A stretch of DNA of 64,000 nt from positions 62,001-126,000 of the forward strand of contig NIVC01000684.1 in NCBI GenBank assembly GCA_002269645.1, given 5' to 3'. Below are positions 11,009 to 64,000 of the stretch, in pieces. The position numbers and the translations under genes were made by a program. Under the pieces are notes generated by a model. The model was not told where the DNA came from. It was given only the letters and a program-made list of their open reading frames with translations, and searched no databases. Each line of letters starts with the position of its first letter. The stretch's first letter is position 1. Origin of the DNA: Macrostomum lignano (Eukaryota).

Positions 11009-11058
11009 AAGCCCATAATACTTAATTCGTAATTCTCTATTTGATTGTTTTTTACCAG

Positions 11059-16400: not shown

Positions 16401-19400
16401 ATGGACTTGGACAAGGAGGCTATTCGATGCTGGAACCATATGCAGAACTTGGCGCCAATGTCGTTAGACTTGCCTGTGCACTTAGCAACGGACGATTTGC
16501 GAACTACTGGTGGTGACAGCGAGTACATACAGGACTCTCATAGTTTGAAGACGTTCACCTGGATTGACGACTGGCAACAGCTGATGTTGCCACGGATCAA
16601 AGACGATCGATTCGTAGACATCGTTTTTGAAAGGCGGAAGATTCTTTGCGATATTATCAACAAAGAAGTCGACTCTTTGAACGGCAATAATGAAGAATTT
16701 CAGCGCTGGTCGGAATTCAGCAGCTCCGTAACTGACGGGATATTTCATCTCAACCAACAGAAAGGCGATCGGGTCAAGCGGATTCGTAAGCGCCGTCTGA
16801 TTGAACCAACTGAAGTGAGCCTGAGCTTGCAGTCCACTAAGCGGGACAGCGTTGTCAAGCTGGCTCCTTATCCATCGTTTACTGTGCAGCGCCGAGTTGG
16901 CAAGAAGTCGCGCCTTTGCTGCCTGTTTGACAGTATCGAGCATATTCCAACGCCTATAACAGTGACGGCTGTTGTGAACACCCAATACATTAGCCGATGG
17001 GAGATGCGCTGCTACTTTCACGAAGCCAGGGATCTTGCTATTGCCGAGGACAAAAACCAGCTGTACCTGTACGCTATTCTGAGCATTTCTGGCTCAAGCG
17101 CCGCTACATCAATAATAAAAAATGATTTCCACACGCAGCTGTGGCGTTGGAATGAAACAATCATTTTTCGCAATCTGGTGTTTCACGAACACGAGGACCA
17201 GGTGTTCGCTTCCCCGCCAATGATGGTCATTGAATTCTTTCGCAAGTTGCCAATACACAACGATATGTTTCTCGGCAGGTGCATCATTGACTCCGACAAC
17301 TTTGTTGTGCAGTTGGAGAACGAGAGGCACACAGAGGACCAGCTTCCTGTGCTGCAGTGGTACAAGGTTCACCTGAGAGGAATTGAAGATGCTGGCTGCG
17401 TTCTAGCAGGATTTCACTTTCGCTGCCTCAACACTCTGAGACCTTCCAACAAAATATTCGAGAACTCGATCCTCACACCACCGGAGAAAAACATGGAAGA
17501 ATTATTTAAACAGGACAGAGTGGTCCTGGATAACCGCAAACGATTTGAGATCCCAGCTGAGATCTTGCCTGTTCTTGTGCCTCATGTGCTGAAGATAACA
17601 TCGTGGGGCTTAAGAGAGCTTCGCAAGTACATGCTTTCCCGAGTAAGCAATCCTACAATCGAATTTCGTGTTGGGCACAATGTTCTTCAAACAGAAACTC
17701 TAAAATACGATAAGAGTCCAACCTTTGTGAATAGGTCTCATTCTATGCTAATCTACCTGCCTCTAGAAGTTTCCTATCTGCCTGAGCTCTTCATGGTGGT
17801 TAGAGATTCTCGCGCTTTTGGTCGCGCTCCGCTCATCGGCATGACGCGCATTCCGCTTCACAAGTGTCGGTTTAAAGACTCTGCTCAATTAGATGAGCTT
17901 GAACCGGACGAGATTAACTTTTTCATCGACACCATGTGCGGTAACATCCGGTCAACTTCGAATACTGAAAGCACCTACGACTCCCTGCGCATGCCGATTA
18001 AAGTGGACTTTTCGCGCGAGTTCTTCTTTCTATTTGAGCCACCATCGCAGCTGGCTTTTCGGCGTAACTTCCGGACCGACGAATACGATCCAGTACTTAA
18101 AAAGTATGAGGAGAAGCCAACAATTTTTCGTCAGCTAAAAGGTGCTCTATTCAACTTGTTTCTATCCAGTGGTGATCAAAAAGTCATCGAAGACTCCCAG
18201 TCCGCTAACATTGACTATAAGATGGTTATAGGCGACGAGACCTTGTCCAAGACGAAGCCGGATTGGTGGTGCAAATACTATCTATCCAAGACAAATAGCC
18301 TGGCGAAGGCGATCAACTATCTAGAAGGTGACAAACTTGAGTTCTACTATACAAAACTGGAAAACGCTGTTGTTGAAATCGGAGAAACAAGCAGCTACTT
18401 TTATAATCAAAATAGGTACATGAAAGTTTGCCAAATGCTTACCAGCGAACTAACGGCCGAACCGCTAAACGAAGAGAATTGTTTCCTTAGTAGGGAAAAT
18501 CGGGAAGAGAGCCGAAGTCGATTATATCAAGTTCAGTACAACGGATTTGAGGACGTTTTTGAGTCGATAAATCTAATGCGCTGCAACCAGATGACATCCG
18601 ATGAGGAAAATCGAGTTTGCGGTATTTTCCTAGGGAAAGTCCGCCTCTACTACCTGGGCGCCCTAGTTGATCCTTATCAAGTAGAAGAAGCAATGGAGCA
18701 GCTGTACCGAACGAAGACGCAACAAAACGTGCTACCGTATACTCAACTACACGGCACAGTGCCGAAAGAAGCTAATCGACAGGACTGCCTTGTTCGTGTC
18801 TACGTTGTTCGAGCTCTGGAACTTCAAGCTGGCAACATGTCTAGTCTGCCAAATTCGTACATTGAAGTGTTCATGGCGGACAACAAGAAGGAGACGCAAC
18901 TTAGCAGCAGCAAGGCAAATTCTATTGAGATGGACAGCAACCCGGTGTACGGCCGCATGTTCGAACTTTACTGCATCGTGCCGTTTCAAACTCGGCTTCG
19001 AGTTCGGATAATGGACAAGTCTACGTTTTTATTCGACGAAGAGATTGGTTCTACAACCATCGACTTGGAGAAGCGCATGACAACCATCTACCGGAGCACT
19101 TGCGGTCTGCCGCAGTGCTATCGCCAGGCCGGTGTCAACGCGTGGCGCGACATGGACAAGCCCAGCGAGATTCTTAGTCAAGTTTGTCGCCGATTTCGTC
19201 TAGAGGAGCCTCATTTTTATACGGAGAACGATATAGACGAGGGTTCTGACAATGGCCAAGTAATGGACGAAACAAAGCTACTGCACCGATACCTCGTATT
19301 TCCACCAGGGTGTCCCAAAGAGCCTTACAAGAATCGAGGTAGATATAGTCGGTATAGTCAACTCTTGGATGACATTGACGGAATGACGGCAAATGTGCTA

Positions 19401-22440: not shown

Positions 22441-25400
22441 GGTGCGTTGCAAATAGCCCAGCAGAAGTCATGTTCACCATACGCTCGTAGACTAAGAACT
22501 GAAGTCACCGAGAAATTTGGTTTTTTTCGCGACCAATTTGGTTTATTTCACGTCACGTATGCATTCACTATCCTCTCTCTGTCCACCAGACGGATTTTAG
22601 CGTATGGTCCTCTCTGCGCCGTTATTTGCTTTAGCTATGCCTTCCAGCTATGGCCCAAATTGCTCGCAGTTAACCCCGAGGATGCGGGTGGCCTGCTCTG
22701 CAGGCCATAGCTCATGGTCTATGGCTTGCGAATCATTTCGATGCTGTTTCGAAAAATAAGTCTACATAACCGTAGCTTGCGGCTTTGGCCTGCTGAGCAG
22801 ACCATGACTATTTTCTATACAGAAAACATTTTGTAGAACACAGTCAACGAGTTTTTCTATCTGATGTAGTCATTTTTAATAAGAAACATTAAAAATCAAG
22901 AACATAAATTGCTATAACGTATGAACAATGTTTACATGTAACAGCTAAACAGTAACAATAACATAACCTGTTTATAACTAGATGGCATATTATGCATAAA
23001 TTCGGTTTCCCGCTATAAATGTTTTGCTGGATTTTCAGGCATTAATACTGCCCAATATGCTTTTAAACCTGCGTTACTTTTTTCGGGCCTTTCCAGATTA
23101 GGAATTTTTAGACTATAAGTTTAAAAGAATCCGGAAAATAATTTAGAGCGAGAAACCGAAGTTATGCCGCATATTGTTTGTCAATTAAAAATGAGCTGCC
23201 TTTGGCTTTGAAAACTAAAAACAAACTTAAGTTACACCTGAACGGCATGCCAGTCGGCAAAGCAGGGGGCTGCGATCAGTCCAGGGTTGCCTTCACATGA
23301 GCCGCAGCAGAAGACGGTTTTCTTGGCCTGGCCGTTCTTGTAGCACTGCCTGCACCGCTTCGTTGGTCGGGCTTGCGCTTCGGTGGCTTCAATGCGCTTC
23401 AGCGAGTGCTGTTGGTGAGCCACTGCTGGCTGCTGCTGTGCCCGAGCAGCTCTTACGCGACCTGGTCCAGAGGAGTTGATAAAGTTCTTGATGATGGTCT
23501 CCAAAAACTTTAAAATCTCCAGTGTACCTCCGCACGATCGGTACACAACCCAGGCATTTCTGGCCAGTACAAGAAAAAGGTGCGCGCCGAGCTTTGTGGG
23601 CCACTTCTGAGTCCGCCGGCATGGGTTGTATGGCTGCAAGGCAGAGTCCAGCCTGTCGACACCACCCATAAATTTATTGTACGACACAACTGTCTGTTGC
23701 TTCTGCTGGATGATCAGTTCGTTTCGCACGATTCGGTGAACAGGGTGAAGTTGGGCTACGCCTTGCGTGTCAAGGAAGTAAACTTTCTTTAGGCCCGAGC
23801 TCTTCCTGTCAACTATTTTCAACGCTAGCACGTTTCCTTTGCGCATAAACATGTAGCTTGGAGCTTGGTTTCCCTGGATACCACGAAGGCCATCTGGGAC
23901 ACCGCGATCGGCGCGAACTGTGCATGTCAGCATGGTGCTCCGCTGCAGCAGATACATCGCAAGACGATAAGATCCGAACCAGCTATCACAGAAGATGTGA
24001 TAACCTAAACCCAATACGTACCTAACTGCCTCCACCAGGACTTTCTCACTCAGAGACAGCCCCCCACACCCGAGACCTTGACCGAATCGCTCATTCTCAG
24101 CTCTACTAGAGTGCACTAAGAAGTTGCTGACGTAACCGGATCTAGCTTCGCAGAGACAATACCGTTTGATGCCATATCGCGCTTTCTTGGATGGAATATA
24201 TTGACGAAACATGACGCGTCACCTGAACAGAACAAGCTCTTCGTCGACACTAGTTTCTTTTTCTGGCATGTACACACTGCGACATATCTCAGCTACACGC
24301 GTAATAAATGGTCTTGCCTTTGCTAGCGGGTCGTTTCCATCGAAGTTGTTACAGTCATAGAAGCGCAGCTGGCTACTGATCTATTGGTACCTGTCCCTTG
24401 TCAGGCAAGCGAGTTGTTGGAAGAAATGTGTTGCGTAGAAATCATCTTTGCTCCAATAGTTGGCAATCTCGGGCTTTTTAACTATTCCCATGTAAAGCGA
24501 CATGGCGACAAACTTCTTCATCTCGTCTACGGTCACGTCTTTCCACGCAGAGAACCTTTGAGGCAGGTTTGGCATCGATGCTTGTAGCTCGTCGAATTTG
24601 TGCCACGCTCGCGCATTGGTCCAAGCGCAGAGCTGTTGCAGCAGGTCAGCAGTCAGAAACAGCTTGAAAAATGCAGCTGGATCGTCATCGGCAGTCTCTG
24701 GCCTCGGTAAGTCAGGATCCATACCAGGCATTCCCAAGAACTCGGGCTCTGCATCTGGCCATTGATCCTGCCCAGCTTCCCGTGCCACCCAAGCATCATT
24801 TGGCAAGCCTCCGGCGTCTTCATTTGGCTGGAGATGCAGGTCCTCCTCTTCTTCATCTTCACCCTCGTCCGCTGTTAGCCAGCCTTCCTCCTCCTCTAGT
24901 TCGGAGTCGGTATCCGGATCAAATTGCACTTGAGCAGCCATGACAAACACTGTCCAACACTCGGAAAGTATTGCACTAAATAAAGCTTCTGATGATTTAA
25001 TTAATTAATTGGCCCTTGACTTTGATAATGTAGCTTCAAGCTTTCTTGATTTGATGAATCCCACAATTTTACTGTGTCATTTATACCCACCCACCCGTCT
25101 ATCCACCCCACTCCACTGAATGATTCCTGCACGGTCATGAGTGCGGGAATGACATCTGTACGAGTGCGCGCTAGCGCACGAGTGCACGATGTCCTTCACG
25201 CACGAGTGAACGTGAAGGAATCCCATTGTCGGATGATTCATCGTGCAGGAATGCTCAAAACCGTGCAGGAATGCATTTCTGCGCCTAACGCTTTTTCAGA
25301 GAGATTTTACCATAGACATCCATTCCTGCACACAAAAGAGTGCAAGAATGCCATTCTTGCATGGAAAATCAGCCGACAATTTGTTTTTTGCTTTCATGTT

Positions 25401-28346: not shown

Positions 28347-29815
28347 TTACTGGAAGAACACAATCAAAACAATCAACGTTGGGACCGCCACCCGACTGAA
28401 ACTGGCGGATTTAGCCATTCCGTTGCCACTTTCGTAGCTATTGTAGCTGTCGATTGTGTGTCTGTATGGCGATGGACCGATGCAAAACTTGTCGGACAGC
28501 GGCATCATGCAAATGTACCTGTGCTTGGCTCGGCAACTCTCGCTTACAAACCTTCCCTCAGAGTAGATGACGCAGCGGCAGGACAGTAACTCGCGTTTGC
28601 AGTCACCTGTCGATTCTACGTTACTGAGGGCAAAGATAAATTTCACATACTGAGAATTTAGTCAGTCAGTCAGTCAATCAGTCAGTCAGTCAGTCAGTCA
28701 GTCAGTCAGTCCGCCAGTCAGTCAGTCAGTCAGTCAGTCAGTCAGTCAGTCAGTCAGTCAGTCAGTCAGTCAGTCAGTCAGTCAGTCAGTCAGTCAGTCA
28801 GTCAGTCAGTCAGTCAGTCAGTCAGTCAGTCAGTCAGTCAGTCAGTCAGTCAGTCAGTCAGTCAGTCAGTCAGCATCATGAAAAGCAAGGTCACTCACTA
28901 GGGAATCTCGTAGCCATTAACGTACTCGTACTTAAAAGTCGACTCCGAAATCAATGAATGATTAATTCCCACCCAGTGGGGATGTTTAATCGTCTCAACT
29001 GAGCCGAGCAAGGACAGGCAGCTCTTTAAAGACTCATGAATGTGGTCCTTCTGATAAATGCCATGGCTTAGCCAGCCGCGGCCGAGGCGACGGCAGGCTC
29101 TTTCGGCTTCGGCCCTTGTAGCGACTGTCTCCGGGTGAAACGGGACACCATAACAGCTGATTCCGGTGTCAAACCAGCCTGTGGGGCACCTGAACATGTA
29201 AGATTGAGCCGCAAACAGTTAGATATGCTACTGAAGAGCTCACCAAATCTATTGTTTTGTTTACCCTGTAAAAATTCATTCGCATTCCTCATCTCTACGA
29301 TAGTAAAAGTCATGGACAATTCACCTTTTAAATGGTTCCGCCTCTACAACTAGTCCAGTGGATAGTGCTTCTGGAAATGTTTTCGTTGTAAACTTCACGG
29401 CAAATTCGCTGCCGACCGTGACGAACTGGAAACTGTCGAGCAGTGGTGTATCCGAAGTCAACGACGGTTTGACAATGTCTGATGTAGATGTATAACCAGG
29501 CACGGAATTGTAGAACTGAGCAGTGGCTGAGTAGGCCTTCAAGCTCGCGTTGACAACTGAGACCAGCCAGCGATACTCCGAGGCGTCAGTGCCGCTGTAC
29601 TTGATGCCGATTTTGCATTCCTGATTCGGGTGCAGATATTTGTACAAATAGTGCTTCAGATGCAGGCGAATGGTCTCGGAAGTTTGATACACTTGTATTT
29701 TCGAACTCTTCTCGCAGTAGTAGGTTGTGGTAGCATGCATCTGCTGGCTGAGGGAACACGAAACAATAAAAAGGATGACAGTCTGAAGGGCAAACTTCTT
29801 CCAAGTAGGCGCCAT
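28347..29815 (-). CDS. Surface protein A: signal peptide + CUB-like domain + C-type lectin-like domain + hydrophobic (GPI-like) tail; join(29815..29325,29189..28899,28623..28347), 352 aa
   Basis: Both introns are GT-AG and phase 2. CPTGWFDTGISCY..ACRRLG..WVGIN..CVIY..C..KHRYIC is the CTLD pattern. The N-terminal domain has C..YLHPNQEC..FAVKFTT..STGL, which is CUB-like. C-terminus VAVPTLIVLIVFFQ. Confidence 0.85.
28661..28873. repeat. (GTCA)n tetranucleotide microsatellite in intron 2 of gene A
   Basis: About 50 near-perfect units. Confidence 0.98.
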
Positions 29816-32555: not shown

Positions 32556-34562
32556 TCAAATCGGAGCGCTACTCTTGTACAGTTGACGAATTTTCGGCAG
32601 GCAGGGAACGGCGAGCATAACCAGGAGAATCAGCACGATAAGAGTCACTGCAGCCGAGCGCCACGCAACGCTGACACCTCCTGACTGCGGGCAGCTGTCC
32701 GGGTTACATTCATAGTCAGTCGAATCTCTACGATGCAACGCTGGCAGAGGCATTGTGCAGATGTAGCGATGCGTTGAGTTGCAATTCTCGGCTAGGAATC
32801 GAACCCCGGCGGATCGATAGATGACGCAGTTGCACGAGCTTGCTGTCGGGCTTGCTAGTCTCATTTGACAGTTTTCGATTAGTTCCACCTTGCTGAATGT
32901 TTGAATTGCAGTTGTGAAATTTTACCAAAAACTCATGAAGGCAAACCGTAACAGGTTCTAATAAACCTTGAAGTAGTATTGAAAAAAGTCTATACATCTC
33001 GGTAGAGACAACACAACAGAATCCAGCGTAACCATTCAATAAGAATTTGCCAATTCGTCTTTTAATGCACGCAAACTTACTGAGGCGTTTTGTAGCCGTT
33101 GGAGTAGCTGAAATTATGAGTCGAAGATTTGCTACCCGCCGTGATGGTTGATCCTTCACCGGCTCGCACGATGCCCACCCAGTAAGTCAGGTTTAGCTTC
33201 GATTCGTTTCCCTTTATAGACAGCAAATTCTCAATGGACTCGGCAATGTGGTCGCTTGTGTAGACGCCCTGGCTGAGACTGCCGCCGCCAAGGCGAGCGC
33301 AAGCGACGTCGCCTTGAGCCTTGTTAACTTGAGCCACGTCCGGCAGAAACGGCAGGCCGTAGCAACTGATGCCGGTGTCGAACCAGCCGTTAGGGCACCT
33401 GATTGTGCGCATGGGGCAGTGCAAGGGTAGTCTGTGAGATATCTGTGATAAAGCCTCGTGTAACATTCTGTACTGCAGAGCAAGTCCTAGCAAAGTTCTC
33501 TTCATGCTAACAGGTCTAAAATATGTCAAAAAGACGAATACAATCCTGAAAGTTCCTCCTACATGTACTTGGTCCAGTTACACGTAGAAATTTCAGAAGT
33601 GTGAAAATTATTTATCATGAATTGTGATTCGTCATGATCTGACCGTTTTTTATGCTTAATAAGGTTAACTTCTTGGACCTAAAACAATAACATGCATTTA
33701 TTTCGTTAAGTTTTAAGATTAACAGTCGAAACCAATAAAAATTATCAGGCTTCAATTCTTACGTATTTTTTTGCCGTTTCCGGTGTCAGGCTGATCAACT
33801 TTCGAGACCTCGGCAGGGTCTTTCTCGAAACTGCCGTAAGTTCTATGGTAATTTCAATCGATTTCTTCTTGGCGCCATTCACCCGACGCCATTCAAATGT
33901 ATGCGAGCCTCTTAAGCAAGCCATAAGTGCGGCTTCTTCATCTTAGGTCTGTTATAAGGTCCGATGTAATTAACTTTCTAGAAATTCCCCCCTTGCCTTT
34001 TAAACACTGATTCCCAGCAGCGTCTAACTAACAGACAAATATAACTCTATAAAAATTACCGGTCAAACGGTTCAGCCCTCAGCACAAGTCCAGTAGAATG
34101 CGCCTCTGGCAGTTTCATTGTAGCGAAGACCACGCTGAAGTTGTTCCCATCGGTGACGAACTGGTAGCTGTCCAGCTGCGGCGTGTGCAGCGTCAACGAT
34201 GGCTCCACGCTGGCCGACTGAGGCGGATTCGGGTCGATGGAGTTGAAGAACTTCGCCGATGCTGAGTAGGCTCTCATGCTGGCGTTGACGACAGAAACTA
34301 GCCAACGATGAGATCTGGCAGAGCCAACGGAACTGCTCCGGTACTGAACTCGCATCTCGCAGTTCTGGTTCGGGTGCAGGTAGGTATAAATTGGGTGCTT
34401 CAATTCTAGCTGGATTGTTCCACTGGCAACGATGGTCTGCGGGCCCGTCCGCTCCCGGCATCTGTAGCTCTGTACTTGAGCTTGAGCCGGCCTGTCGCAG
34501 AAAGTGCAAACAGTAACGGCAGATAGAATAAAGGAGACTTGAAATGCTTTCCAGTTTGCCAT
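32556..34562 (-). CDS. Surface protein B, tandem paralog of A; join(34562..34060,33398..33081,32892..32556), 385 aa
   Basis: Same exon structure and phases (2,2). Shared blocks YLHPNQ.C, RWLVSVVNAS..AYSA.A.F.NS, S.V.PSLT..TP.LDS.QFVT.G, GWFDTGISCYG.PF, CVIY, HRYIC.MPL. C-terminal hydrophobic stretch AVTLIVLILLVMLAVPCL followed by basic residues. Confidence 0.85.
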
Positions 34563-35169
34563 TAAACTGGCATAGTCATGTGATTTGACCAAGAGCATTT
34601 TGTTTGTCAAGCGTCAAAGATATTGCAAGGCACAGTTGGGGGTTTTATTTATATTACACTTGCGCAGATATCATGCCAGTTGGAAATGCAGCTTATTTCT
34701 TAGAAAATTCCTGCGAAAATTGGCACGCGAAGTCATACATGTACATAGCGCAGCACGACTGTAAGCGTGTGATCGAATGCATGCTATGCGTTGTGCAAAA
34801 TTATTGCAGCTCCCAGAAATAGGAGCATAATACGCGTAACATATAATAGAAAATAATCGATTTGGCATTTCAATTTATTAAAAATATTGGTTGGTCTTGC
34901 ACTTATCATCAATGTAAGGACATAAATCAACGTTATTTCTCAAAGGGTACTCTCACCCCCTACAGGCAAAATGAACAGACATCGATCAAAATTGATCACA
35001 TTATCGAAAATCTGAAAGCAAAAGACAGTAACCGAATTCTTTTTACCATAGACACTAAACTGAATTATGCACTCACTTATCGGGTCTGTATTTGTTCATT
35101 TAAGGCTATGTTTAAAGACGATGAGGGTTGTTTTTTTCTTAAAGACAGGGGCTGTGCGCATTATGGCAA

Positions 35170-40126: not shown

Positions 40127-41716
40127 GAAACATCACAAGAATAAAATATCACAAATATGAAACATCACAAGAATGAAACATCACAAGAATGAAACATCAC
40201 AAGAATGAAATATCACAAATATGAAACATCACAAGAATGAAACATCCCATGAATTAAACATCACAAGAATGAAATATCACAAGAATGAAATATCACAAGA
40301 ATGAAACATCACAAGAATGAAACATCACAAGGATGAAACATCACAAGAATGAAACATCACAAGAATGAAACATCACAAGAATGAAAAACATCACAAGAAT
40401 GAAACATCACAAGAATGAAACATCACAAGAATGAAACATCACAAGAATGAAACATCACAAGAATGAAATATCACATAAATAAAACATCACAAGAATGAAA
40501 CATCACATAAAGAAACATCACAAGAATGAAACATCACAAGAATGAAACATCACAAGAATGAAACATCACAAGAATGAAACATCACATGAATGAAACATCA
40601 CAAGAATGAAACATCACATAAATAAAACATCACAAGAATGAAACATCACATAAAGAAACATCACATAAATGAAACATCACAAGAATGAAAAACATCACAA
40701 GAATGAAACATCACAAGAATGAAACATCACAAGAATGAAACATCACAAGAATGAAACATCACAAGAATGAAATATCACATAAATAAAACATCACAAGAAT
40801 GAAACATCACATAAAGAAACATCACAAGAATGAAACATCACAAGAATGAAACATCACAAGAATGAAACATCACAAGAATGAAACATCACATGAATGAAAC
40901 ATCACAAGAATGAAACATCACATAAATAAAACATCACAAGAATGAAACATCACATAAAGAAACATCACATAAATGAAACATCACAAGAATGAAACATCAC
41001 AAGAATGAAACATCACATAAATAAAACATCACAAGAATGAAATATCACATAAAGAAACATCACAAGAATGAAACATCACATAAAGAAACATCACATAAAT
41101 GAAACATCACAAGAATGAAACATCACAAGAATGAAATATCACAAGAATGAAACATCACATAAATAAAACGTCAAAAGAATGAAACATCACATAAAGAAAC
41201 ATCACAAGAATGAAACATCACAAGAATGAAACATCACAAGAATGAAATATCACATAAATGAAACATCACAAGAATGAAATATCACATAAAGAAACATCAC
41301 AAGAATGAAACATCACATAAAGAAACATCACAAGAATGAAACATCACAAGAATGAAACATCACAAGAATGAAACATCACATAAATAAAACATCACAAGAA
41401 TGAAACATCACATAAAGAAACATCACAAGAATGAAACATCACAAGAATGAAACATCACAAGAATGAAATATCACATAAATGAAACATCACAAGAATGAAA
41501 CATTCCATGAATGAAACATCACAAGAATGAAATATCACATAAATGAAACATCACAAGAATGAAACATCCCATGAATGAAACATCACAAGAATTAAACATC
41601 ACAAGAATGAAACATTCCATGAATGAAACATCACAAGAATGAAACATCACAAGAATGAAACATCCCATGAATGAAACATCACAAGAATAAAACATCACGA
41701 CTGAAACGTCACAAAA
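40127..41716. repeat. 16-bp satellite (AAGAATGAAACATCAC)n, about 100 copies
   Basis: Tandem units with variant monomers. Confidence 0.97.
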
Positions 41717-41949
41717 TGAAAATAATTTTGAAGCTAGTTTCAACCTACAGTGAGCTACGACTTTTCGAGAGACATAAATATTTTTGGCGTCTATTCGAAA
41801 TTTCCATATTTATGCAGGGAAATTTTATCGCTGAAGGAATTCTATATCGATAAATAGTCAGGGCCGACAGAAGCCTCACGACTTTGCGCTTGGCTAAGCT
41901 GGGGGGGGGGGGTCGGAATCCTCATTAAACAGATCGCTCGGCTGTGACC

Positions 41950-43259: not shown

Positions 43260-43979
43260 ATGGACAATACAGTTCGGACTAAAGACTCCAGTCAACCGCA
43301 GATTGTCAGCAGGGCTGACGATGGCAGCGCCGCTTCACCGAGCCAGCGAGAGCAGCTGAGCTCAGACAGGTAAAATGATTTTTGTTTTGGAATTTTTCTT
43401 TAATAAGTTGTATCTCTTTTGGCGCCTCTTCATCGCCTTTTGGTGCCTCTTCATCGCCTCCTGATCTTATTTAATGGCGCCTCCTCATCTCCTTTTGGCG
43501 CCTCCTTATCTCTTTTGGCGCCTCCTCATCTCCTACGGCGGCCCCTCAACTCCTCATCCCATCTCTCATCTCGTCTCTCACAAGATGTGCACCACACACC
43601 CCAAAAATGCAGACTCGCATCAGCTGCTAACCGAGGGTCACCAGCCTGCACCCCACTATTCAACGCGGCCGCTGCAAGCTCCGGCCAAACTGGACATCCA
43701 ATAGCGCCTACAGCACAGCAGCAGCCACGAAAGAAGACTTTCACCAACAGTCGAGAGCGTCAGCGACAGCTCAGCGTCAAGGCGGCCTTCGCCGATCTTC
43801 GTCGCCTGCTGCCGACTCATCCGCCGGACAAGAAGGTGAGTAAAAGTGAAATTCTGCGACTAGCGATCCGCTACATCAATCTGCTGGACGGGGTGCTGCT
43901 CTACCTCACTGATCAGCAGGTCGGCGACGCGTCGGCGAGAAGCGACGATTCCACAATGTCTATGGCCGAAACTGACTGA
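43260..43979 (+). CDS. TAL1: TAL/SCL/LYL-family bHLH transcription factor; join(43260..43369,43613..43979), 158 aa
   Basis: [52 protein letters not shown] matches the TAL1 signature [45 protein letters not shown] phase-2 GT-AG intron joins a plausible first exon. The symbol is family-level only. Confidence 0.88.
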
Positions 43980-44014
43980 CCAGAGTTTGGGATATATAAA
44001 TTAGAAAGATTCGC

Positions 44015-45492
44015 TAGATCAGTTCAGTCGAGGTTCTCTAGATCAGTTCAGTCGAGGTTCTCTAGATCAGTTCAGTAGAGATTCTCTAGATCAGTTCAGT
44101 AGATTCTCTAGATCAGTTCAGTAAAGATTCTCTAGATCAGTTCAGTCGAGGTTCTCTAGATCAGTTCAGTAGGTTCTCTAGATCAGTTCAGTCGAGGTTC
44201 TCTAGATCAGTTCAGTAGAGATTCTCTAGATCAGTTCAGTAGATTCTCTAGATCAGTTCAGTAGGTTCTCTAGATCAGTTCAGTCGAGGTTCTCTAGATC
44301 AGTTCAGTAGAGATTCTCTAGATCAGTTCAGTAGAGATTCTCTAGATCAGTTCAGTAGATTCTCTAGATCAGTTCAGTAGAGATTCTCTAGATCAGTTCA
44401 GTCGAGGTTCTCTAGATCAGTTCAGTAGAGATTCTCTAGATCAGTTCAGTCGAGGTTCTCTAGATCAGTTCAGTCGAGGTTCTCTAGATCAGTTCAGTAG
44501 AGATTCTCTAGATCAGTTCAGTAGATTCTCTAGATCAGTTCAGTAGAGATTCTCTAGATCAGTTCAGTCGAGGTTCTCTAGATCAGTTCAGTAGGTTCTC
44601 TAGATCCGTTCAGTCGAGGTTCTCTAGATTAGTTCAGTCGAGGTTCTCTAGATCAGTTCAGTAGAGATTCTCTAGATCAGTTCAGTAGATTCTCTAGATC
44701 AGTTCAGTAGAGATTCTCTAGATCAGTTCAGTAGAGATTCTCTAGATCAGTTCAGTCGAGGTTCTCTAGATCAGTTCAGTAGAGATTCTCTAGATCAGTT
44801 CAGTCGAGGTTCTCTAGATCAGTTCAGTAGAGATTCTCTAGATCAGTTCAGTAGATTCTCTAGATCAGTTCAGTCGAGGTTCTCTAGATCAGTTCAGTAG
44901 AGATTCTCTAGATCAGTTCAGTAGAGATTCTCTAGATCAGTTCAGTAGATTCTCTAGATCAGTTCAGTAGAGATTCTCTAGATCAGTTCAGTAGAGATTC
45001 TCTAGATCAGTTCAGTCGAGGTTCTCTAGATCAGTTCAGTAGAGATTCTCTAGATCAGTTCAGTAGATTCTCTAGATCAGTTCAGTCGAGGTTCTCTAGA
45101 TCAGTTCAGTCGAGGCTCTCTAGATCAGTTCAGTCGAGGTTCTCTAGATCAGTTCAGTAGATTCTCTAGATCATTTCAGCCGAGGTTCTCTAGATCAGTT
45201 CAGTAGATTCTCTAGATCAGTTCAGTAGAGATTCTCTAGATCAGTTCAGTAGATTCTCTAGATCAGTTCAGTAGAGATTCTCTAGATCAGTTCAGTAGAG
45301 ATTCTCTAGATCAGTTCAGTCGAGGTTCTCTAGATCAGTTCAGTAGAGATTCTCTAGATCAGTTCAGTAGATTCTCTAGATCAGTTCAGTCGAGGTTCTC
45401 TAGATCAGTTCAGTCGAGGTTCTCTAGATCAGTTCAGTCGAGGTTCTCTAGATCAGTTCAGTAGATTCTCTAGATCAGTTCAGTAGAGATTC
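44015..45492. repeat. 22-24-bp multi-allele minisatellite: constant TCTAGATCAGTTCAG plus one of TCGAGGTTC / TAGAGATTC / TAGATTC / TAGGTTC, about 63 units
   Basis: Direct inspection; begins about 35 bp after the bHLH stop codon. Confidence 0.96.
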
Positions 45493-46419
45493 CCTACATC
45501 AAATTAACTCAGACTGCAGGAAGTTGCTTTACTTATTTGTTATAGCGAAACAATGAATTTTAACAATTCTGTCTCAGTATAGATAAATAAATGATTATAT
45601 GTATATATTTGTTGACAACTAAACAAAAGTGAAAAAAAATATAAAAAAATATAATACAGTCATTATATATTGCTACACAGTTGATGACGCTAAAAATAGA
45701 TTTTGTTTAATTTTGAGATTTTTCGCACAGATTTAAAAAAAGCTGTTAAAAACTAACTAACAAAGTTGTTGAAAAATTTACTGAAATATTATATATGTTT
45801 AAAATACATAAATATTGTTAATGAGCAAATTATTAAACTGTAAGCTAGAAAAAAGTAGGCAAATTTAGGCCTTTTAATACAATTATTTCCAATAAATTCC
45901 ATTTACTATATTCGGCACAAGACAAAAAGGAACGACAATAAATGACCGTCTTAGGTACAAATTATAGAAAAAAGGAGTTGAAAAATACATTTATATAAAT
46001 TAATTGCTTCGCAATGTAATTAGCAAGCGATAAAAAATTATAAAAAGATATTGCGTTTTGATTTGAAGGAAGCCGAAAAGACAAGATAGACGAATTATAC
46101 ACAGATTTGGGCTTCAGAGCCAGCTACGGAATTTCCATGGATTTTCCGGCAAAAAAGCGACCCGGAATTTCATGGATTCCCCCAAAAAGATTAAGGGTTT
46201 ACGGAGTTCTTCTTTTACATGGAATTAGTTTGTAAAACAAAGTGTTTGAAGTGAATGCAAACAAAAATTTTATTAGTGAGGCAATTTTAATACTATCGAA
46301 TGTGAGACATTGGCTATTGATATTTTGTTTATTCGATATAAATTTTACACAGACAATCGCGCGATAGAGGGAAACCAACACTGCATTAACGAAACATGAG
46401 CACCCAAAATACTTTGGTG

Positions 46420-47091: not shown

Positions 47092-50000
47092 CGTTAGCAC
47101 CGACAGCAGGAGTCTGAGCAGCAGTCTGATTTGAAAACCAACGACTCCGTCTAGCGAGTCGTTCCAGCTGCCGTTTGCGCATGACCTGACTGGCTCGACT
47201 GCCGCCGGAGCCGCGCTGAAACTGGTGCGCCTGCTCAACCAGGTCTGACCAGCCGCTAATGGTCTGGAGAAATGGGTTGGGGGCGCTTCAGTAGGGGTTT
47301 AATTTATGGGGATAATGTCAATCCGTAGGAGAGCAGGAGCGGGATCTGGGACAACGGAGGCTAATATTGAGGATCTGGGAGGTTGGCCCAGCAACTGGGG
47401 ATCTGGGAGGCTGGCCCAGCAACTGAGGATCTGGGAGGCTGGCCCAGCAACTGAGGATCTGGGAGACTGGCCTAGCAACTGAGGATCTGGGAGGTTGGCC
47501 CAGCAACTGGGGATCTGGGAGGCTGGCCCAGCAACTGAGGATCTGGGAGGCTGGCCCAGCAACTGGGGATCTGGGAGGCTGGCCCAGCAACTGACACTCT
47601 GGGAGGCTGGCCCAGCAACTGAGGATCTGGGAGACTGGCCTAGCAACTGAGGATCTGGGAGGTTGGCCCAGCAACTGGGGATCTGGGAGGCTGGCCCAGC
47701 AACTGAGGATCTGGGAGACTGGCCCAGCAACTGAGGATCTGGGAGGCTGGCCCAGCAACTGAGGATCTGGGAGGCTGGCCCAGCAACTGAGGGTCTGGGA
47801 GGCTGGCCCAGCAACTGACACTCTGGGAGGCTGGCCCAGCAACTGGGGATCTGGAAGGCTGGCCCAGCAACTGAGGATCTGGGAGGCTGGCCCAGCAACT
47901 GAGGGTCTGGGAGGCTGGCCCAGCAACTGGGGATCTGGGAGGCTGGCCCGGCAACTGACACTCTGAGAGGCTGGCCCAGCAACTGAGGGTCTGGGAGGCT
48001 GGCCCAGCAACTGAGGATCTGGGAGACTGGCCAGAAATTGGGGATCTGGGAGGCTGGCCCAGCAACTGAGGATTTAGGAGGCTGGCCCAGCAACTGAGGA
48101 TCTGGGAGGTTGGCCCAGAAACTGAGGATCTAGGAGAAAGCAAAGCAACAAAGCAAGCCCAGCAAAAAACTCACCATTCTGCTAGCTTTTTGATTTTGAG
48201 CTCCGCAGTCTGCTGCCTGCTGCTCCTGAGCCGATTGAGGCAATGCCGCTTCGTCGCAGTCAACTGCGCAGGCGAGAGCGGAGAGGAACTCGGATTGGGT
48301 GCTTCGAACCGAAAGCAGCGAAGCGGTAGATGATGCAGCCGCCGGCTCCAGCTGCGTCAGCGAACGGCGGCGAGCGAGTTGCGATGCCATTGGTGCGTCT
48401 GCGGGTGATGAGCGCGCACTGCGTACATTGGTGTACATCAGATGTACATTAGGGGTAGGGGAGAGATTGATCAGATGTACATTAGGGGTAGGGGGAGAGA
48501 GACTGATCAGATGTACATTGGGGGTAGGGGAGAGACTGATCAGATGTACATTAGGGGTAGGGGGAGAGAGAGACTGATAAGATGTACATTAGAGGTAGGG
48601 GAGAGAGACTGATCAGATGTACATTAGGGGTAGGGGGAGAGATTGATCAGATGTACATTAGGGGTAGGGAGAGAGAGAGACTGATAAGATGTACATTAGA
48701 GGTAGGGGAGAGAGACTGATCAGATGTACATTAGGGGTAGGGGGAGAGAGACTGATCAGATGTACATTAGGGGTAGGGGGAGAGAGAGACTGATAAGATG
48801 TACATTAGAGGTAGGGGAGAGAGACTGATCAGATGTACATTAGGGGTAGGGGGAGAGAGATTGATCAGATGTACATTAGGGGTAGGGAGAGAGAGAGACT
48901 GATAAGATGTACATTAGAGGTAGGGGAGAGAGACTGATCAGATGTACATTAGGGGTAGGGGAGAGAGACTGATCAGATGTACATTAGGGATAGGGGAGAG
49001 AGACTGATCAGATGTACATTAGGGGTAGGGGGGGGGCTAGTCAGCTGACATTGAGTGTGCATCAGATATACATTAATTAGGAATTAAGATTATTAAGTAT
49101 AATTTACCCAAAACTGCGGAATCTGAGCCAGTGGTCTCAAATTCCACCACAGTTGGCGCTGTAAATACAAAAAAATGATTAAAATGTTATGTCTACAGGA
49201 CTGAAATAGCTTATCGGATAGAGAATATCAATTTTCAACATCAGCTTACCGGATCCTCCAACATCTGCGTGCACATCTACTATTGAAGGGCCATCGACTT
49301 GATCTGTGAAGTACTGCCGCATCTCCTGGCTGAATAGCTGTTGAGAATCGTCAAATCCATCTATTAGCAGTGTCATAACGCGCGAGGCTTGTTCCACCTT
49401 AGAGGCCAGGTAAATTTACGGCTTTTATTGTTGTTTTGATGAAAATAATGAGTAGGACTTTACCAATTTCTTTCAATTTGTTTGCCGCACCACTAGGCAC
49501 TATTCACTGCCTCAATCTCCACCCTACCCGTAATGTACATCTGATCAGTCTCTCTCCCCTACCCCAATTTACATCTGATCAGTCTCTCTCCCCTACCCCA
49601 ATGTACATCTGATCAGTCTCTCTCCCCTACCCCAATGTACATCTGATCAGCCTCTCTCCCCTACCCCAATGTACATCTGATCAGCCTCTCTCCCCTACCC
49701 CTTGCCTTCCTACCCCTAATGTACATCTGATAAGTCTCTCTTTCCCACCCCAAATGTACATCTGATCAGTCTCCCTTCCTATCCTCAATGTACATCTGAT
49801 AAGTCACCTTTCCCACCCCAAATGTACATCTGATCAGTCCCACTTCCAACCCCTAATGTACATCTGATCAGTCTCCCTTCCTACCCTCAATGTACATCTG
49901 ATCAGTCTCCCTGCAACGTACATCTAAAGTACACCATATGCTAGCAGACCAGCTCTGTCCACCAATATATCAAGAGCCCAGCTAATGATTGACCTATTAT

Positions 50001-52799
50001 AATTACCGCTATTACAAACAAACTAACCTTTAGAGGATGGTGGGCGCAGGTGTGAAACACGCTACCAGCAACGCTTTTAGCTACGGCCTCGAGTGCTGCA
50101 GGCTGAGGCACCAGCGATTGGGTGGCCATGCGGTGCCACAGGCCGAAGCAGAGAGCGACCAGTTGCCATGACGCAAGAGGCAGCGCATCCAGCACTCTGG
50201 GAGGGGAGAAGCGAGAGATCAGACAGTGGACTTAAAGATTGACTTATAAAATCATTGCGAATTATTATCAGAATAGGGTTATGACCATTGGGAGAATATG
50301 ATCAGAATAGGGTTATGACCATTGGGAGAATATGATCAGAATAGGGTTATGACCATTGGGAGAGTATGATCAGAATAGGGTTATGACCAATGGGAGAATA
50401 TAATCAGAATAGGGTTATGACAATTGGGAGAATATGATCCGAATACGTTTATGAGCATTGGGAGAGTATGATCAGAATAGGGTTATGTTATGACCATTGG
50501 GAGAATATGATCAGAATACGTTTATGACAATTGGGAGAATATAATCATAAGGGTTATGACTGAAATTGAGACATGGAAAAAATAGGACTAGGTCTAGGAC
50601 GAAAATTTTGCAATAAATCATAAAACATTAGCGAGAAAAAAACAATAAATAATAATTGTTAATAAAGTCCATATGCGATTAGCCTGCAACCAATCAAATA
50701 AACACTTAATATAAATGAGCTGCGCCACAAACAGTCTAATGTTAAATTTAAAACATTAATCTGTACGTGTTCGGTATCGCACGCAGATCAGTATCCTGCC
50801 GGGGGTTTATAAGTTAGTAGAGGCTTAAAAACAACCCAATGCGCCCTCTATACTCTTGGCTAGCTAAGAGACCGACCGCCGACCGATAGAGTGGAGAGAA
50901 ATTCATCTAACAGGCGTGCAACGTTAAGCCCTGTTAGTGTAGACACGTAGAAGCGGTGTGGCTTAGAAATTAATAACATGGATGTAGCCATGCATTCGCT
51001 GACTTATGTTAGTTGGTTCGCAATCGTAATGTTTAAAATTTGTTTCTCGGAAACACGCAAAAAGCTAGCTATAACTTCTCTGCTTAACAAGCAAGCATGC
51101 GCAGAGAAGCTGCACTGTACAAGTGCTTTAAGCAGAATGAACTTCCTTCGGCTTTTGTGTTGCCATTGTTTCTAAATTAGCTGCGAACTGTACTGGATTT
51201 TGGGAGATGAGGATTGGGGCGATTCTGAATGACGATTGGGGCGATTGTTGATGAGGATTGGGGCGATTCTGAATCATGATAGGGGCGATTCTGGATGATG
51301 ATAGGGGCGATTGTTGATGAGGATTGACCCGATTCTGGATGAGGATTGGGGCGATTCTGAATGAGGATTGGGGCGATTCTGAATGAGGATTGGGGCGATT
51401 CTGGATGATAAGGATTGGCCCGATTCTGAATGATGAGGATTTGCCCGATTCTGGATGAGGATTGGGGCGATTCTGAATGAGGATTGGGGCGATTCTGAAT
51501 GAGGATTGGGGCGATTCTGAATGAGGATTGGGGCGATTCTGAATGAGGATTGGGGCGATTCTGGATGATGAGGATTGGGGCGATTCTGGATGATGAGGAT
51601 TGGGGCTATTCTGGATGATGAGGATTGGCCCGATTCTGGATGAGGATTGATGCGATTCTGAATGAGGATTGGGGCGATTCTGGATGATGAGGATTGGCCC
51701 GATTCTGGATGATGAGGATTGGCCCGATTCTGGATGAGGATTGATGCGATTCTGAATGAGGATTGGGGCGATTCTGGATGATGAGGATTGGCCCGATTCT
51801 GGATGATGAGGATTGGCCCGATTCTGGATGAGGATTGGGGCGATTCTGGATGATGAGGATTGGGGCGATTCTGAATGAGGATTGGGGCGATTCTGGATGA
51901 TGAGGATTGGGGCGATTCTGAATGAGGATTGGGGCGATTCTGGATGAGGATCGGGGCGATTTTGGATGATGAGGATTTAAGCGAACACGTAAGCGAGGGC
52001 GATTCTGGATGATGAGGATTGGGGCGATTTTGGATGATGAGGATAGGGGAGATTCTGGATGATGAGGATTGGCCCGATTCTGGATGATGAGGATTGGGGC
52101 GATTCTGGATGATGAGGATTGGGGCGATTCTGGATGATGAGAATCGGGGCGATTCTGGATGATGAGGATTCTCGATGGGGAGTGGGGCTTTTGGGGAGTT
52201 TCAATGATAGAACATCTACATGTGAATTATCCCGAGTTCACTTACTGTCGCACAGTTGTTATCTGATCCTCGGCATCTGTCAGGTCATCAACAGACAACA
52301 GGACAGCTTCTCCATCGCTGCCAAACAGACCGTCAGGCAGAGCTAATAGAAATTTCTTAGCAACGTTAGCCAAAGTGAAATGGCTGACACCGCAACAGTC
52401 GCCTTCTAGATCGACGCAGACACCCCGGGTCATGCAGTGTATGATGCGTTTTACATCACCAGGATTTCCTGGTCTGCGAAAAAGATCTGGCACGCTGGCA
52501 AAATCTCTGGCCAATCTGACCAATAATTGACGCAGGGGTTCTGGCAGACATCTAATATTATTTGGATCGCTAGAATGTAAATTGGCGCCAAAAATCACTG
52601 GCTCAACTTGAATAGCCTGTTGCTGGTTGCTAATGTTGTTGATGATTGTTGAATTATAACTTGCATGATTGACGCCACTGTCTGTTTGTTGATCATCGGT
52701 TCGATTTACGCAGTTAAACAAAGATCTAATTAGAGACATTGCACCTTTAGCCTCAGCATCTGACGCTGCAGCCTGTTGCTCCTGTTGTCCCATTTCCAT
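47092..52799 (-). CDS. RhoGAP-domain protein; join(52799..52246,50196..50028,49397..49250,48398..48175,47263..47092) plus a tentative terminal exon at 45513..45509 (V-stop)
   Basis: VIFGANL, PEPLRQLL, DLFRRPGN (arginine finger), TLANVAKKFLLALPDGLF, VLDALP...LVALCFGLWHRM. All junctions are GT-AG with consistent phases (2,0,1,0,1). The terminal exon and any upstream exon are uncertain. Confidence 0.85.
47370..48135. repeat. 28-bp minisatellite (GGGAGGCTGGCCCAGCAACTGAGGATCT)n in a RhoGAP intron
   Basis: About 27 units; source of ORFs 47299-48143. Confidence 0.96.
48428..49037. repeat. About 35-bp minisatellite (CTGATCAGATGTACATTAGGGGTAGGGGGAGAGAGA)n
   Basis: About 17 units; an inverted counterpart lies at 49521-49937. 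Confidence 0.95.
49521..49937. repeat. Inverted copy of the 48428-49037 minisatellite (AATGTACATCTGATCAGTCTCTCTCCCCTACCCC)n
   Basis: Reverse-complement units, more diverged toward 49900. Confidence 0.93.
50268..50560. repeat. About 34-bp minisatellite (ATGATCAGAATAGGGTTATGACCATTGGGAGAAT)n
   Basis: About 8 units. Confidence 0.9.
51205..52170. repeat. 22-25-bp minisatellite (GATGATGAGGATTGGGGCGATTCTG)n
   Basis: About 40 units, ending about 70 bp from the RhoGAP exon-1 donor. Confidence 0.95.
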
Positions 52800-53554
52800 T
52801 GTTTGGCTAATAAAGCACACAAAAATATTTCTAAATAAACGAGACAGAAATTATTAAAATTCAATCATTTCTAGAAGTCAAAGCACTTGGCTTTGCATGA
52901 TCAAATTTAATTTGCATAAAAGTGCAGAAAATGACATGTATGCTACAATTACATATTAGCATTTCAATGTAATTGTAATTAGATATATAGAAAATTTGTA
53001 TGCAACATATTATGGCTATTTGAGAAAATACTACCAAAATGGCAAAACAAGTGCCAATGAGTAGAAAATATGATAAATTAAGCTTTCTTTCCTACCATAT
53101 TAAATAGACAAAAAGGGAAAAACAAGAATTTATTTCTTAATTACTATGATCTTTTGGTTTTATCCCAGTATCAAGGCACTTACTTCTTTAGCATGATTGC
53201 TAGCAGTTTTATTACTAATGCTTTGCTGCTATTGTCAAAGTATAAGCTAGCTCTACCAAATTGCTATTAAAGTTAAAAACAAAAGTAATACAAAAAATCT
53301 AGTTATTTTTATTACTTTTCATAAGTCAATTTTATGTAATATACTAGCTAGCAATCTAGTGCGGCCCCCCTTCGGGGTGCCCAATAAGAAAGGAGCAAAA
53401 ATAGTTCATGGAAAAAAGCAATTAAAAAAGCACATTTTCTTAAGAACCAATTCCTTCTTCACTTTTAAAAATCACTTTTGTGTAAAATTGACACAGACAA
53501 AGATGTTTGCTATGAATCACTTTTAGTATAGGTCCCCTTAAATAGAAAATATTC

Positions 53555-54929: not shown

Positions 54930-55880
54930 CAATAGCCTTTTCTAATCTAGTGCAGTAATCCTTGGTTTATCAAGTGCAATAATCCTTAGTTTATCAAATG
55001 CAGTAATCAGTGCAATAGTCATTAGTTTATCAAGTGCAATATTCCTTGGCTTATCAAGTGCAATAATCCTTGTTTATTAAGTGCAGTAATCCTTAGTTTA
55101 TCAAGCACAGTAATCCTTAGCTTATCAAGTGCAGTAATCCTTGGTTTATAAGTGCAGTAATCCTTAGTTTATCAAGCACAGTAATCCTTAGCTTATCAAG
55201 TGCAGTAATCCTTGGTTTATCAAGTGCAATAATCCTTGGTTTATGAAGTGCAATAATCCTTAGTTTATCAAACGCAGTAATCAAGTGCAATAGTCATTAG
55301 TTTATCAAGTGCAATATTCCTTGGCTTATCAAGTGCAATAATCCTTGGTTTATTAAGTGCGTAATCCTTAGTTTATCAAGCGCAGTAATCAAGTGCAATA
55401 GTCATTAGTTTATCAAGTGCAATATTCCTTGGCTTATCAAGTGCAATAATCCTTGGTTTATTAAGTGCAGTAATCCTTAGTTTATCAAGCACAGTAATCC
55501 TTAGCTTATCAAGTGCAGTAATCCTTGGTTTATCAAGTGCAATAATCCTTGGTTTATCAAGTGCAATAATCCTTAGTTTATCAACGCAGTAATCAAGTGC
55601 AATAGTCATTAGTTTATCAAGTGCAATAATCCTTGGTTTATTAAGTGCAGTAATCCTTAGTTTATCAAGCACAGTAATCCTTAGCTTATCAAGTGCAGTA
55701 ATCCTTGGTTTATTAAGTGCAGTAATCCTTAGTTTATCAAGCACAGTAATCCTTAGCTTATCAAGTGCAGTAATCCTTGTTTATCAAGTGCAATAATCAT
55801 TGGCTTATCAAGTGCAATAATCATTGGCTTATCAAGTGCAATAATCATTGGCTTATCAAGTGCAATAATCCTTGGTTTAG
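54930..55880. repeat. 24-bp minisatellite (TTATCAAGTGCAATAATCCTTGGT)n
   Basis: About 40 units with higher-order blocks. Confidence 0.94.
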
Positions 55881-55964
55881 CAAGCACCATAATCCAGGTC
55901 TTTTTAATTAGTCCTTTAATGAAAGCTTTCAATAAAAAAATCATGCTACTTTTATTTTTTAATA

Positions 55965-62170: not shown

Positions 62171-62929
62171 TGACTGTGAAGGAGGCATGCAAGCACCATA
62201 CTGTAGTAACAGGACCAAAAACTCAAAGATCGTGTAATATTTTAGAGGCCTATTTCCTGGAAAAAATACACAGCGCCAGTGAAGATTACAATTCCTTTTA
62301 ATTTAGCAAGCATGAAAGCACAGCATACTATCATGTTACATTTTGTACTGCTGTGTAGTAAAAGTTTCGTTTTCATATTATTTTCTAGTTCTTAGTTTAT
62401 AAACCCAAAGTTGTAAATTACTCTCAACAGACATTACCCTTGTTTTTTCTTCTTAAATCAAGTAAGCAGCTCATATTTGAATTAAATGTGTCATATGCAG
62501 GTACACTTAAGCGATTATATTTTACGTATAATTCCATTTCAATGCATAGAAGTTCCTATACGAGCGTGCACATACACAGCAATTGTATTCATGGTGTGTT
62601 GCATTGCATACATGTAGGTGTCGGAAAGATTATCGGAAAATATTGAACATTTTCGGAAGGGCAGAGGTCAGTAATTGCAACCATTGTTGACCATTCAATG
62701 CTGTTTTGCAATTATGTTTATTTGCTATTCAAAGAGATTTTCAAAAAATTTCGACAGCTTATTCAGTTGCCTGATAAAGTCATATGAAACCCGATTGTCA
62801 AATGAGAATCACCAGTACTTATATATGGTTCTTGCGCCGTTGGTATATTTTTATTAGTTCAGAATAATTATAGCCTCAACACAGATAGTTTGCTCCAGTT
62901 CAAGTCGTCTGTCTATCAGTGCTGCTTGG

Positions 62930-63246
62930 TCACTTGTCGTTGGAGCAGCCGTACCAGTTGCAGAACGGTCGCTTGGCGATGACACGTTTCATCAGTTCCG
63001 TGGCCCGCTCCTCCGCGTCGAGGTCACCTTCCGGCATGTCGCCCGGCTCAATCTAAATCGCGAGATTAAAACACTTGAAACAAATAATTCATATCAATAC
63101 TAATTTATGCAACAAAGTGAGATGCTCACCCTCATTCGCATAGGAGCCGCTTTGAGTCGACTGGCCTGGACAGACTGGGTTAGCTGGGTGACGCACAGTG
63201 TGGCCAGCAGCACACAGAGCGCGACTTTGCCAGACAATTGAAGCAT
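62930..63246 (-). CDS. CCAP-like neuropeptide precursor; join(63246..63130,63052..62930), 79 aa; mature peptide PFCNWYGCSN(DK)
   Basis: Signal peptide MLQLSGKVALCVLLATLCVTQLTQSVQA; phase-0 GT-AG intron of 77 bp; acidic spacer; dibasic KR sites; then PFCNWYGCSNDK*. Compare arthropod CCAP PFCNAFTGC-amide and molluscan PFCNSYGCYNS. Confidence 0.85.
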
Positions 63247-64000
63247 GCTCTCTCTTGGTTGATGCCTTGAAATATCTCTTTTTAAAAAGCTGCAGTTGTT
63301 GCGCGTCAAATGACGAAGAGCTGGCGAAATCATCCGGGGAGTGGGGAGTTTTATTTGTCAGGTTTTGTTGCTGGGCAGAGCAGCGTCTCAGTGGCTGCTT
63401 CTCACACAGCCAATCGTTGCGGTAGGGGCCGGATAATTCAATACAGCGATGTCGATTATTAACACGACGTATATTTCTACCGGTAATTGATTTTTGTTTT
63501 ACTGAGCGAAATATTTTACGCAACGCATGCAGTAGATCAGCATCACCATAAAAAACCTTTATGAAGATGATTTACTCTTTCGTTTTGAGTGACTCGATCA
63601 GGTGATTGACAATATTTTATGAGATGGTAAGGTATAGAATACAAGCTATGACTGTTGCTGCAACAAACTTCTCATGAAACTTTTCTCATTTGGAAACTTT
63701 GCAGAATTACAAATTTCAGAGCTAGCCGAGATTCTGAAGTTTTTGATGAAAAAAATACATGTAAAAAAACGTTGAGCTTTCAATGGTTTATTCCCGCACA
63801 CAGACGAGTGCTCAGAGTATGGCGAGCCTAATTTCGAGTAACCGCATGAACTAGCCATCGCTGCTTGCTTAAGCAATCTAGAAAGAGAGGGTGACGAACT
63901 GGCAGCATCAGTCGCTGACTCCCAATGGACCAGAAGTTAGAGAATTTAATGTCAGTACATCTGGACTCCTTGTCTACACTGTGGAGGAGTTGGAAGAACT

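Follow-up and report, generated by a model that had tools for sequence, protein, structure and literature searches.

A gene on the minus strand of the window, as we call the entire 64-kb stretch of Macrostomum lignano DNA analysed here, very probably encodes the precursor of the crustacean cardioactive peptide (CCAP)/conoCAP-type neuropeptide of this flatworm, a protein of 79 residues. The gene is transcribed and spliced, and its product belongs to the CCAP sequence family. A gene that had been modelled before receives its correct functional annotation, and a known family gains an ordinary member; judged from its translation, this member is a modest variant, with a single peptide copy in C-terminal position, not amidated and with a Trp in the ring.

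Gene structure

The features of the gene, for which all coordinates were re-derived by script, are listed below in the direction of transcription.

63349..63356, minus strand: TATA-like AAATAAAA, approximately 25–30 nt upstream of the annotated partial CDS 5′ end; a possible core promoter
63331..63333, minus strand: upstream in-frame ATG, the start of both 108-aa UniProt models (P0001, P0004)
63246, minus strand: start ATG, from the translation
63130..63246, minus strand: coding exon 1, 39 codons, MLQLSGKVALCVLLATLCVTQLTQSVQASRLKAAPMRMR, encoding the signal peptide plus 11 residues at the start of the propeptide
63163..63246, minus strand: predicted signal peptide MLQLSGKVALCVLLATLCVTQLTQSVQA (28 aa), cleavage site between V-Q-A and S by heuristic reading
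End of exon 1, minus strand: donor site, AGG followed by GTGAGC, read from the letters
63053..63129, minus strand: intron, 77 nt, GT...AG, phase 0, 3′ end TTTAG followed by ATT
62930..63052, minus strand: coding exon 2, IEPGDMPEGDLDAEERATELMKRVIAKRPFCNWYGCSNDK-TGA, with acidic spacer, two KR sites, peptide and stop
62930–63052, minus strand: layout of exon 2, IEPGDMPEGDLDAEERATELM-KR-VIA-KR-PFCNWYGCSNDK-TGA
62990..63052, minus strand: acidic propeptide segment IEPGDMPEGDLDAEERATELM, from the translation
62969..62989, minus strand: processing region KR-VIA-KR, two dibasic prohormone convertase sites with a tripeptide spacer between them
62933..62968, minus strand: predicted mature peptide PFCNWYGCSNDK, Cys codons at 62962–62960 and 62947–62945, predicted disulfide ring CNWYGC
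62930..62932, minus strand: stop codon TGA, in alignment A1 one position past the Lys that matches the K of most relatives' G-K-R
62850..62855, minus strand: AATAAA polyadenylation signal, 75 nt 3′ of the stop

The two-exon precursor with a signal peptide that had been drawn in a preliminary description of this DNA proved to be exact to the base, and spliced translation from the ATG at 63246 yields the 79 residues. The predicted signal peptide carries a Lys as its seventh residue, a hydrophobic core of about 12 residues (residues 9–19; mean Kyte–Doolittle value 2.86) and, by heuristic reading, small residues at −3/−1 within the V-Q-A that precedes the predicted cut. The propeptide that follows (residues 29–60) is acidic, with 8 D/E as against 5 K/R. 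When the intron is retained, the frame ends after nine codons (VSISLCCIN followed by a stop; ORF 63100–63333), and hence the peptide can be produced only by splicing. For the peptide with its disulfide closed, the calculated [M+H]+ is 1431.546 with the terminal Lys and 1303.451 without it.

Transcripts, existing models and a second locus

Homology search with the spliced 79-aa query returned a single cluster with 99% identity and full coverage, comprising four database proteins. These are the GenBank model PAA78499.1 (BOX15_Mlig005724g1) on contig NIVC01000684.1 (492,575 bp), named ‘hypothetical protein, partial’; PAA91293.1, the GenBank model of g2, a near-identical duplicate on NIVC01000090.1; and two UniProt entries, A0A1I8GIS8 and A0A1I8GL75, which derive from the models of an older assembly and are named ‘Gla domain-containing protein’. 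The junction PMRMR/IEPGD is found in all four, that is, the same splice with the intron removed. For this assembly, the GenBank annotation relies only on RNA-seq transcripts (StringTie/TACO and de novo assembly), on which ORFs were called with TransDecoder (Wudarski 2017); consequently, a spliced transcript with the 63130/63052 junction exists, and the RNA-seq check of this junction proposed in the preliminary description is in effect answered by the RNA-seq-derived GenBank models that carry the splice. The idea of a hidden gene that automated annotation had probably overlooked has to be dropped, because models with the exact splice already exist and lack only a correct functional name. The name given in UniProt appears to be spurious, as comparison with Pfam at E ≤ 10 yielded no Gla family.

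The RNA-derived GenBank CDS is 5′-partial and begins at 63324, downstream of the ATG at 63333. Accordingly, the first ATG of the mRNA is probably the one at 63246, which had also been chosen previously, and the ATG at 63333 is probably not the real start. Initiation at 63333 would put 29 charged residues ahead of the signal peptide, and initiation at 63246 brings the signal peptide to the N-terminus.

The two genomic copies are approximately 99%–100% identical across exons, intron and flanks, and each locus has an EF-hand gene and a NIPSNAP gene as its upstream neighbours. Since the near-identity includes the non-coding flanks, comparison of the copies is uninformative with regard to purifying selection. 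It agrees with the large redundancy at ≥95% identity that has been described for the assembly (Wudarski 2017).

Assignment to the CCAP family

The 40-aa product of exon 2 was compared using phmmer with all 1.84 billion (1.84e9) representative proteins, at a threshold of E ≤ 1e-3. Five proteins were retrieved, namely, the query itself and four CCAP/conoCAP-like precursors only: the conoCAP-like proteins of Lineus longissimus (P0005; XP_064631278.1; E = 6.8e-6) and Pomacea canaliculata (P0006; XP_025096117.1; E = 1.3e-5), an unnamed protein from a marine metatranscriptome (P0007; JGI 3300030709; E = 1.6e-5) and an uncharacterized protein of Haliotis asinina (P0008; XP_067656833.1; E = 3.6e-5), the H. 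rubra cluster-mate of which, XP_046555596.1, is conoCAP-like. All four non-self matches score 43–50 bits against the Pfam CCAP family, PF11105, the gathering cut-off of which is 27. The same family is the best Pfam match of the M. lignano precursor, at 14.2 bits (E = 0.044), below the 27-bit cut-off; a sub-threshold score is expected when one short unit is scored against an arthropod-based model, and the multi-copy relatives exceed the cut-off by adding up their units. In a BLASTP comparison with the Lineus precursor, the spacer upstream of the first unit also aligns. Because the similarity is significant library-wide, the CCAP call rests on statistics and goes beyond recognition by eye.

The 14 peptide units of alignment A1 have F, C, N, G and C in common without exception, and all of these residues are present in PFCNWYGC of M. 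lignano. Every row of A1 that has an N-terminal flank shows a KR ahead of the peptide (K-R in at least 90%), as does KR-PFCNWYGC here; thus, the core x-F-C-N-x(2–3)-G-C, the two cysteines capable of forming a ring and the preceding dibasic site are in place. The profile derived from A1, into which the published S. mansoni 9-mer had been taken up, retrieves arthropod CCAP precursors (PFCNAFTGC-G-basic); at E ≤ 10, the search returned arthropod CCAP fragments and others of unknown taxon, and no flatworm protein. Taken together, the phmmer matches and the alignment bear out the original call of a CCAP-type peptide of the lophotrochozoan type, present in one copy and with a six-residue ring.

A CCAP-like motif might arise by chance in a non-genic open reading frame. 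In six-frame translation, the motif [KR][KR]xFCNx(2–3)GC occurs once in the window; 1000 simulations with a second-order Markov model gave a mean of 0.003 occurrences per 64-kb window. At this rate, some copies are to be expected by chance in a genome that measures hundreds of Mb, so that the motif alone is no proof. The motif, however, ends a signal peptide-bearing, correctly spliced and RNA-supported gene with a poly(A) signal, and the similarity to CCAP precursors, significant library-wide, reaches into the spacer. It is the combination of the signal peptide, the in-phase canonical intron, the AATAAA, the RNA-seq-derived junction and the library-wide similarity that identifies a real gene, and the probability that we are dealing with a chance reading frame is negligible.

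The six-residue ring with its aromatic W-Y pair had also been likened to the rings of urotensin-II and somatostatin, and this is the sole feature that would place the peptide in the urotensin-II/somatostatin/allatostatin-C group of Cys-ring peptides, acting on a somatostatin-type receptor. None of these families was recovered among the Pfam matches at E ≤ 10 or among the significant phmmer matches across the 1.84e9 proteins, all of which are of the CCAP type. Furthermore, the ring C-N-W-Y-G-C has no Lys and hence lacks the Trp-Lys pair of the F-W-K-[TY] pharmacophore, whereas the CCAP-invariant F-C-N...G-C residues are all present. The resemblance thus finds no counterpart in the searches, and we consider membership of this group highly unlikely.

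A vasopressin/oxytocin-type peptide would have a ring of equal size (C-x4-C), and the VP/OT and NPS/CCAP systems are ancient paralogues (review PMC5818035). Nevertheless, the first Cys of the M. lignano peptide lies at position 3, after P-F, rather than at position 1 as in the VP/OT type, the C-terminal Gly-amide is absent, and the 79-residue precursor ends with the peptide, which leaves no room for a neurophysin domain; with the in-frame stop and the AATAAA in place, no additional neurophysin exon can follow downstream of 62930, barring alternative splicing. Neither phmmer (significant matches) nor Pfam (E ≤ 10) yielded a match of this type. An assignment to vasopressin/oxytocin therefore appears exceedingly improbable, and we retain the CCAP assignment.

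Ring subtype and the non-amidated C-terminus

In the units of the family, the cysteines are separated by either five or four residues. PFCNWYGC has the four-residue spacing, as do Pomacea PFCNPHGC, Haliotis PFCNYFGC, M/IFCNFYGC of P0007 and FFCNPMGCV of the Schistosoma peptide SmNPP41. Compared with the named lophotrochozoan relatives, M. lignano has one copy at the extreme C-terminal position, and its tail is S-N-D-K-stop, as opposed to x-N-G-K-R in most of the aligned relatives. The peptide has no Gly ahead of a basic residue or of the stop, and the translation of exon 2 thus confirms the missing amidation glycine recorded earlier; with D-K-stop and no Gly donor, amidation is not expected. 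C-terminal amidation, signalled by a Gly donor and basic residues, is typical but not universal in the family, and its absence from the M. lignano peptide is a variant feature rather than grounds for exclusion, because non-amidated CCAP-type units occur in apparently intact precursors (P0007, P0019–P0023) and SmNPP41 is written without an amide. Neither the lack of amidation nor the short ring is thus a novelty, the ring of SmNPP41 being of the same size. The free-acid units of eukaryotes in metagenome and read-archive assemblies, among them the forms PFCN[TV]YSGCG(G)EYKK after [IF]AKR and M/IFCNFYGCG[NS] (L005:3001–3168; L006:480–662; L004:165–842), suggest that free-acid CCAP variants are more widespread than the amidated textbook form.

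The C-terminus could alternatively mark a decaying or non-functional CCAP gene that is transcribed and gives an inactive or unprocessed product, the former G-K-R being now D-K-stop. CCAP peptides are usually amidated, most of the aligned relatives show G-K-R where M. lignano has D-K-stop, and each of the two codons concerned lies a single transition away, GAC (Asp) from GGC (Gly) and TGA from CGA (Arg), so that loss of the amidation and cleavage signal through two point changes is conceivable, if speculative. However, the signal peptide, the KR sites, the cysteines and the invariant core are intact in both copies and in the models of the older assembly, and the gene is transcribed and spliced. 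Non-amidated units in the apparently intact precursors mentioned above, and a S. mansoni peptide that was used as FFCNPMGCV and reported to be active (PMC13367911), likewise speak against decay, which we accordingly regard as improbable and prefer to view the locus as an intact CCAP-type gene.

Proposed processing and action

Processing of the CCAP-type precursor would begin with the joining of the two exons, a step for which the RNA-derived gene models show the splicing. The signal peptide is expected to direct the product to the secretory pathway and then to be removed, and prohormone convertases would cleave at K61-R62 and K66-R67, as the family-wide conservation of KR leads us to infer. 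This would release the VIA tripeptide and the C-terminal dodecapeptide PFCNWYGCSNDK, in which a predicted Cys70–Cys75 disulfide closes the six-residue ring. A carboxypeptidase probably trims Lys79 to leave PFCNWYGCSND, and, without a Gly donor, the peptide would keep a free-acid end. By analogy with the family, the product may be a neuronal or neuroendocrine signal, the receptor of which would be a rhodopsin-type GPCR from the CCAP/neuropeptide-S group. The receptors of CCAP and NPS are orthologous (review PMC5818035), in agreement with what the preliminary description had stated.

Other features of the window

The rest of the window contains a number of protein-coding sequences. An uninterrupted 2485-aa ferlin ORF (C2, FerB, dsrm_Ferlin and Ferlin_C) spans 13410–20867 on the plus strand and is annotated as one gene; its translation matches contig NIVC01000684.1 of GCA_002269645.1 (Mlig_3_7) at every residue, which places the window on this contig. 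An intronless ferlin of such size is unusual in metazoans and suggests a retrogene or lineage-specific intron loss. On the minus strand at 23232–24950, two adjacent ORFs of 326 aa and 189 aa match the C- and N-terminal parts, respectively, of a piggyBac-type transposase (DDE_Tnp_1_7 and zf-Tnp_2), with either a frame break or a short intron dividing the gene. Exons of a GST_N_2-type glutathione transferase (2473–3165, plus strand), of a bHLH transcription factor (43419–43979, plus strand; HLH, E = 3e-17) and of a RhoGAP domain protein (52242–52820, minus strand) were also recognized. Two paralogous minus-strand ORFs of 164 aa (29321–29815) and 184 aa (34056–34610) have signal peptide-like N-termini, share the motifs HLKHxLYxYLHPNQxC...RWLVSVVNASxxAYSA and have no Pfam match; they look like a tandemly duplicated, lineage-specific family of putative secreted proteins.

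Repeats are abundant. A purine-rich degenerate tandem repeat of about 1.9 kb (9107–11007), with GGAGAGAAG-like units and a GC skew of approximately +0.5, produces long but artificial ORFs in both orientations, of 709 aa and 541 aa, and is directly followed downstream by a PTH2 peptidyl-tRNA hydrolase gene (11041–11463). Minisatellite arrays with periods of 16–48 nt and 20–100 copies are located at 40127–41721, 44007–45501, 47368–48136, 51206–52170 and 54945–55895; together with smaller arrays, they account for a large share of the 37–56 kb region, an exceptional density, and several give rise to spurious ORFs of more than 120 aa. No RNA family was detected by Rfam in the 64-kb window.

Relevance of the gene

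CCAP-type peptides are known across protostomes (PMC5818035, PMC3890597), and those of parasitic flatworms have been known since Koziol et al. 2016, as cited in PMC13367911; the M. lignano gene may already be among the homologues of Koziol et al. 2016. Planarians have been reported to be without a recognizable CCAP (PMC3890597). The planarian prohormone cpp-1 was considered as a candidate and rejected, since it encodes a cerebral peptide/APGWamide-like product. The strings PFCNWYGC and FCNWYGC occur in no paper of the literature library that was searched. Although knowledge of the CCAP family itself is unchanged, a gene listed as ‘hypothetical’ or ‘Gla domain-containing’ receives its correct functional name, CCAP-type neuropeptide precursor, and the family is seen to persist in Macrostomorpha, free-living flatworms that branched off early and for which transgenesis tools are available. 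A simple, single-peptide and non-amidated variant also lends itself to studies of ligand–receptor co-evolution in the CCAP/NPS system and offers a comparison with SmNPP41, with its reproductive and motility phenotypes.

Comparison with known CCAP systems

Within the same phylum, SmNPP41 of Schistosoma mansoni (Smp_200800; FFCNPMGCV) has the same F-C-N-x-x-G-C core and is written without an amide (PMC13367911). Compared by the peptide alone, it is identical to the M. lignano sequence at five of the nine aligned positions and differs in its tail, V versus SNDK. It is described as a CCAP in PMC13367911, with citation of Koziol et al. 2016, shows neuronal expression patterns, and its RNAi affects motility, gonads and stem-cell proliferation (PMC13367911). 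At 1 uM, SmNPP41 reportedly activates SmGPCR9, an orphan receptor that was modelled on a neuropeptide FF receptor, not on a CCAP receptor (PMC13367911); a CCAP receptor homologue is present in the S. mansoni genome, according to the same paper citing Koziol 2016. By analogy, the SmNPP41–SmGPCR9 report hints at a possible non-canonical receptor. A flatworm CCAP lineage in which amidation was lost through two transitions, a longer precursor was truncated and a free-acid Trp peptide came to signal via a non-canonical rhodopsin GPCR might be envisaged on these grounds, but we consider so composite a history doubtful.

With arthropod CCAP, PFCNAFTGC-amide (PF11105), the M. lignano peptide has in common the P-F-C-N start, the G-C end, the disulfide ring and the single copy. 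By contrast, the arthropod peptide has five residues between the cysteines and is amidated (G-[KR]-[KR]-R), and its precursor carries long C-terminal precursor-associated peptides.

The conoCAP-like precursors of the lophotrochozoans Pomacea, Haliotis and Lineus are alike in the signal peptide, in the KR before the peptide and in the core x-F-C-N-x(2–3)-G-C, and most of their units keep the Asn two residues past the second Cys that is also found in M. lignano. They are 215–259 aa long and contain 3–4 copies, each followed by Gly and basic residues and thus amidated, whereas the M. lignano precursor, of 79 aa, has a single copy at its very C-terminal end, lacks the Gly and carries a Trp in the loop. 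The closest ring is that of the metatranscriptomic protein P0007, with its three units M/IFCNFYGCG[NS], in which an aromatic residue and Tyr likewise fill the loop (C-N-aromatic-Y-G-C) and no amidation Gly precedes the basic residues; it differs from M. lignano in carrying three copies in 225 aa.
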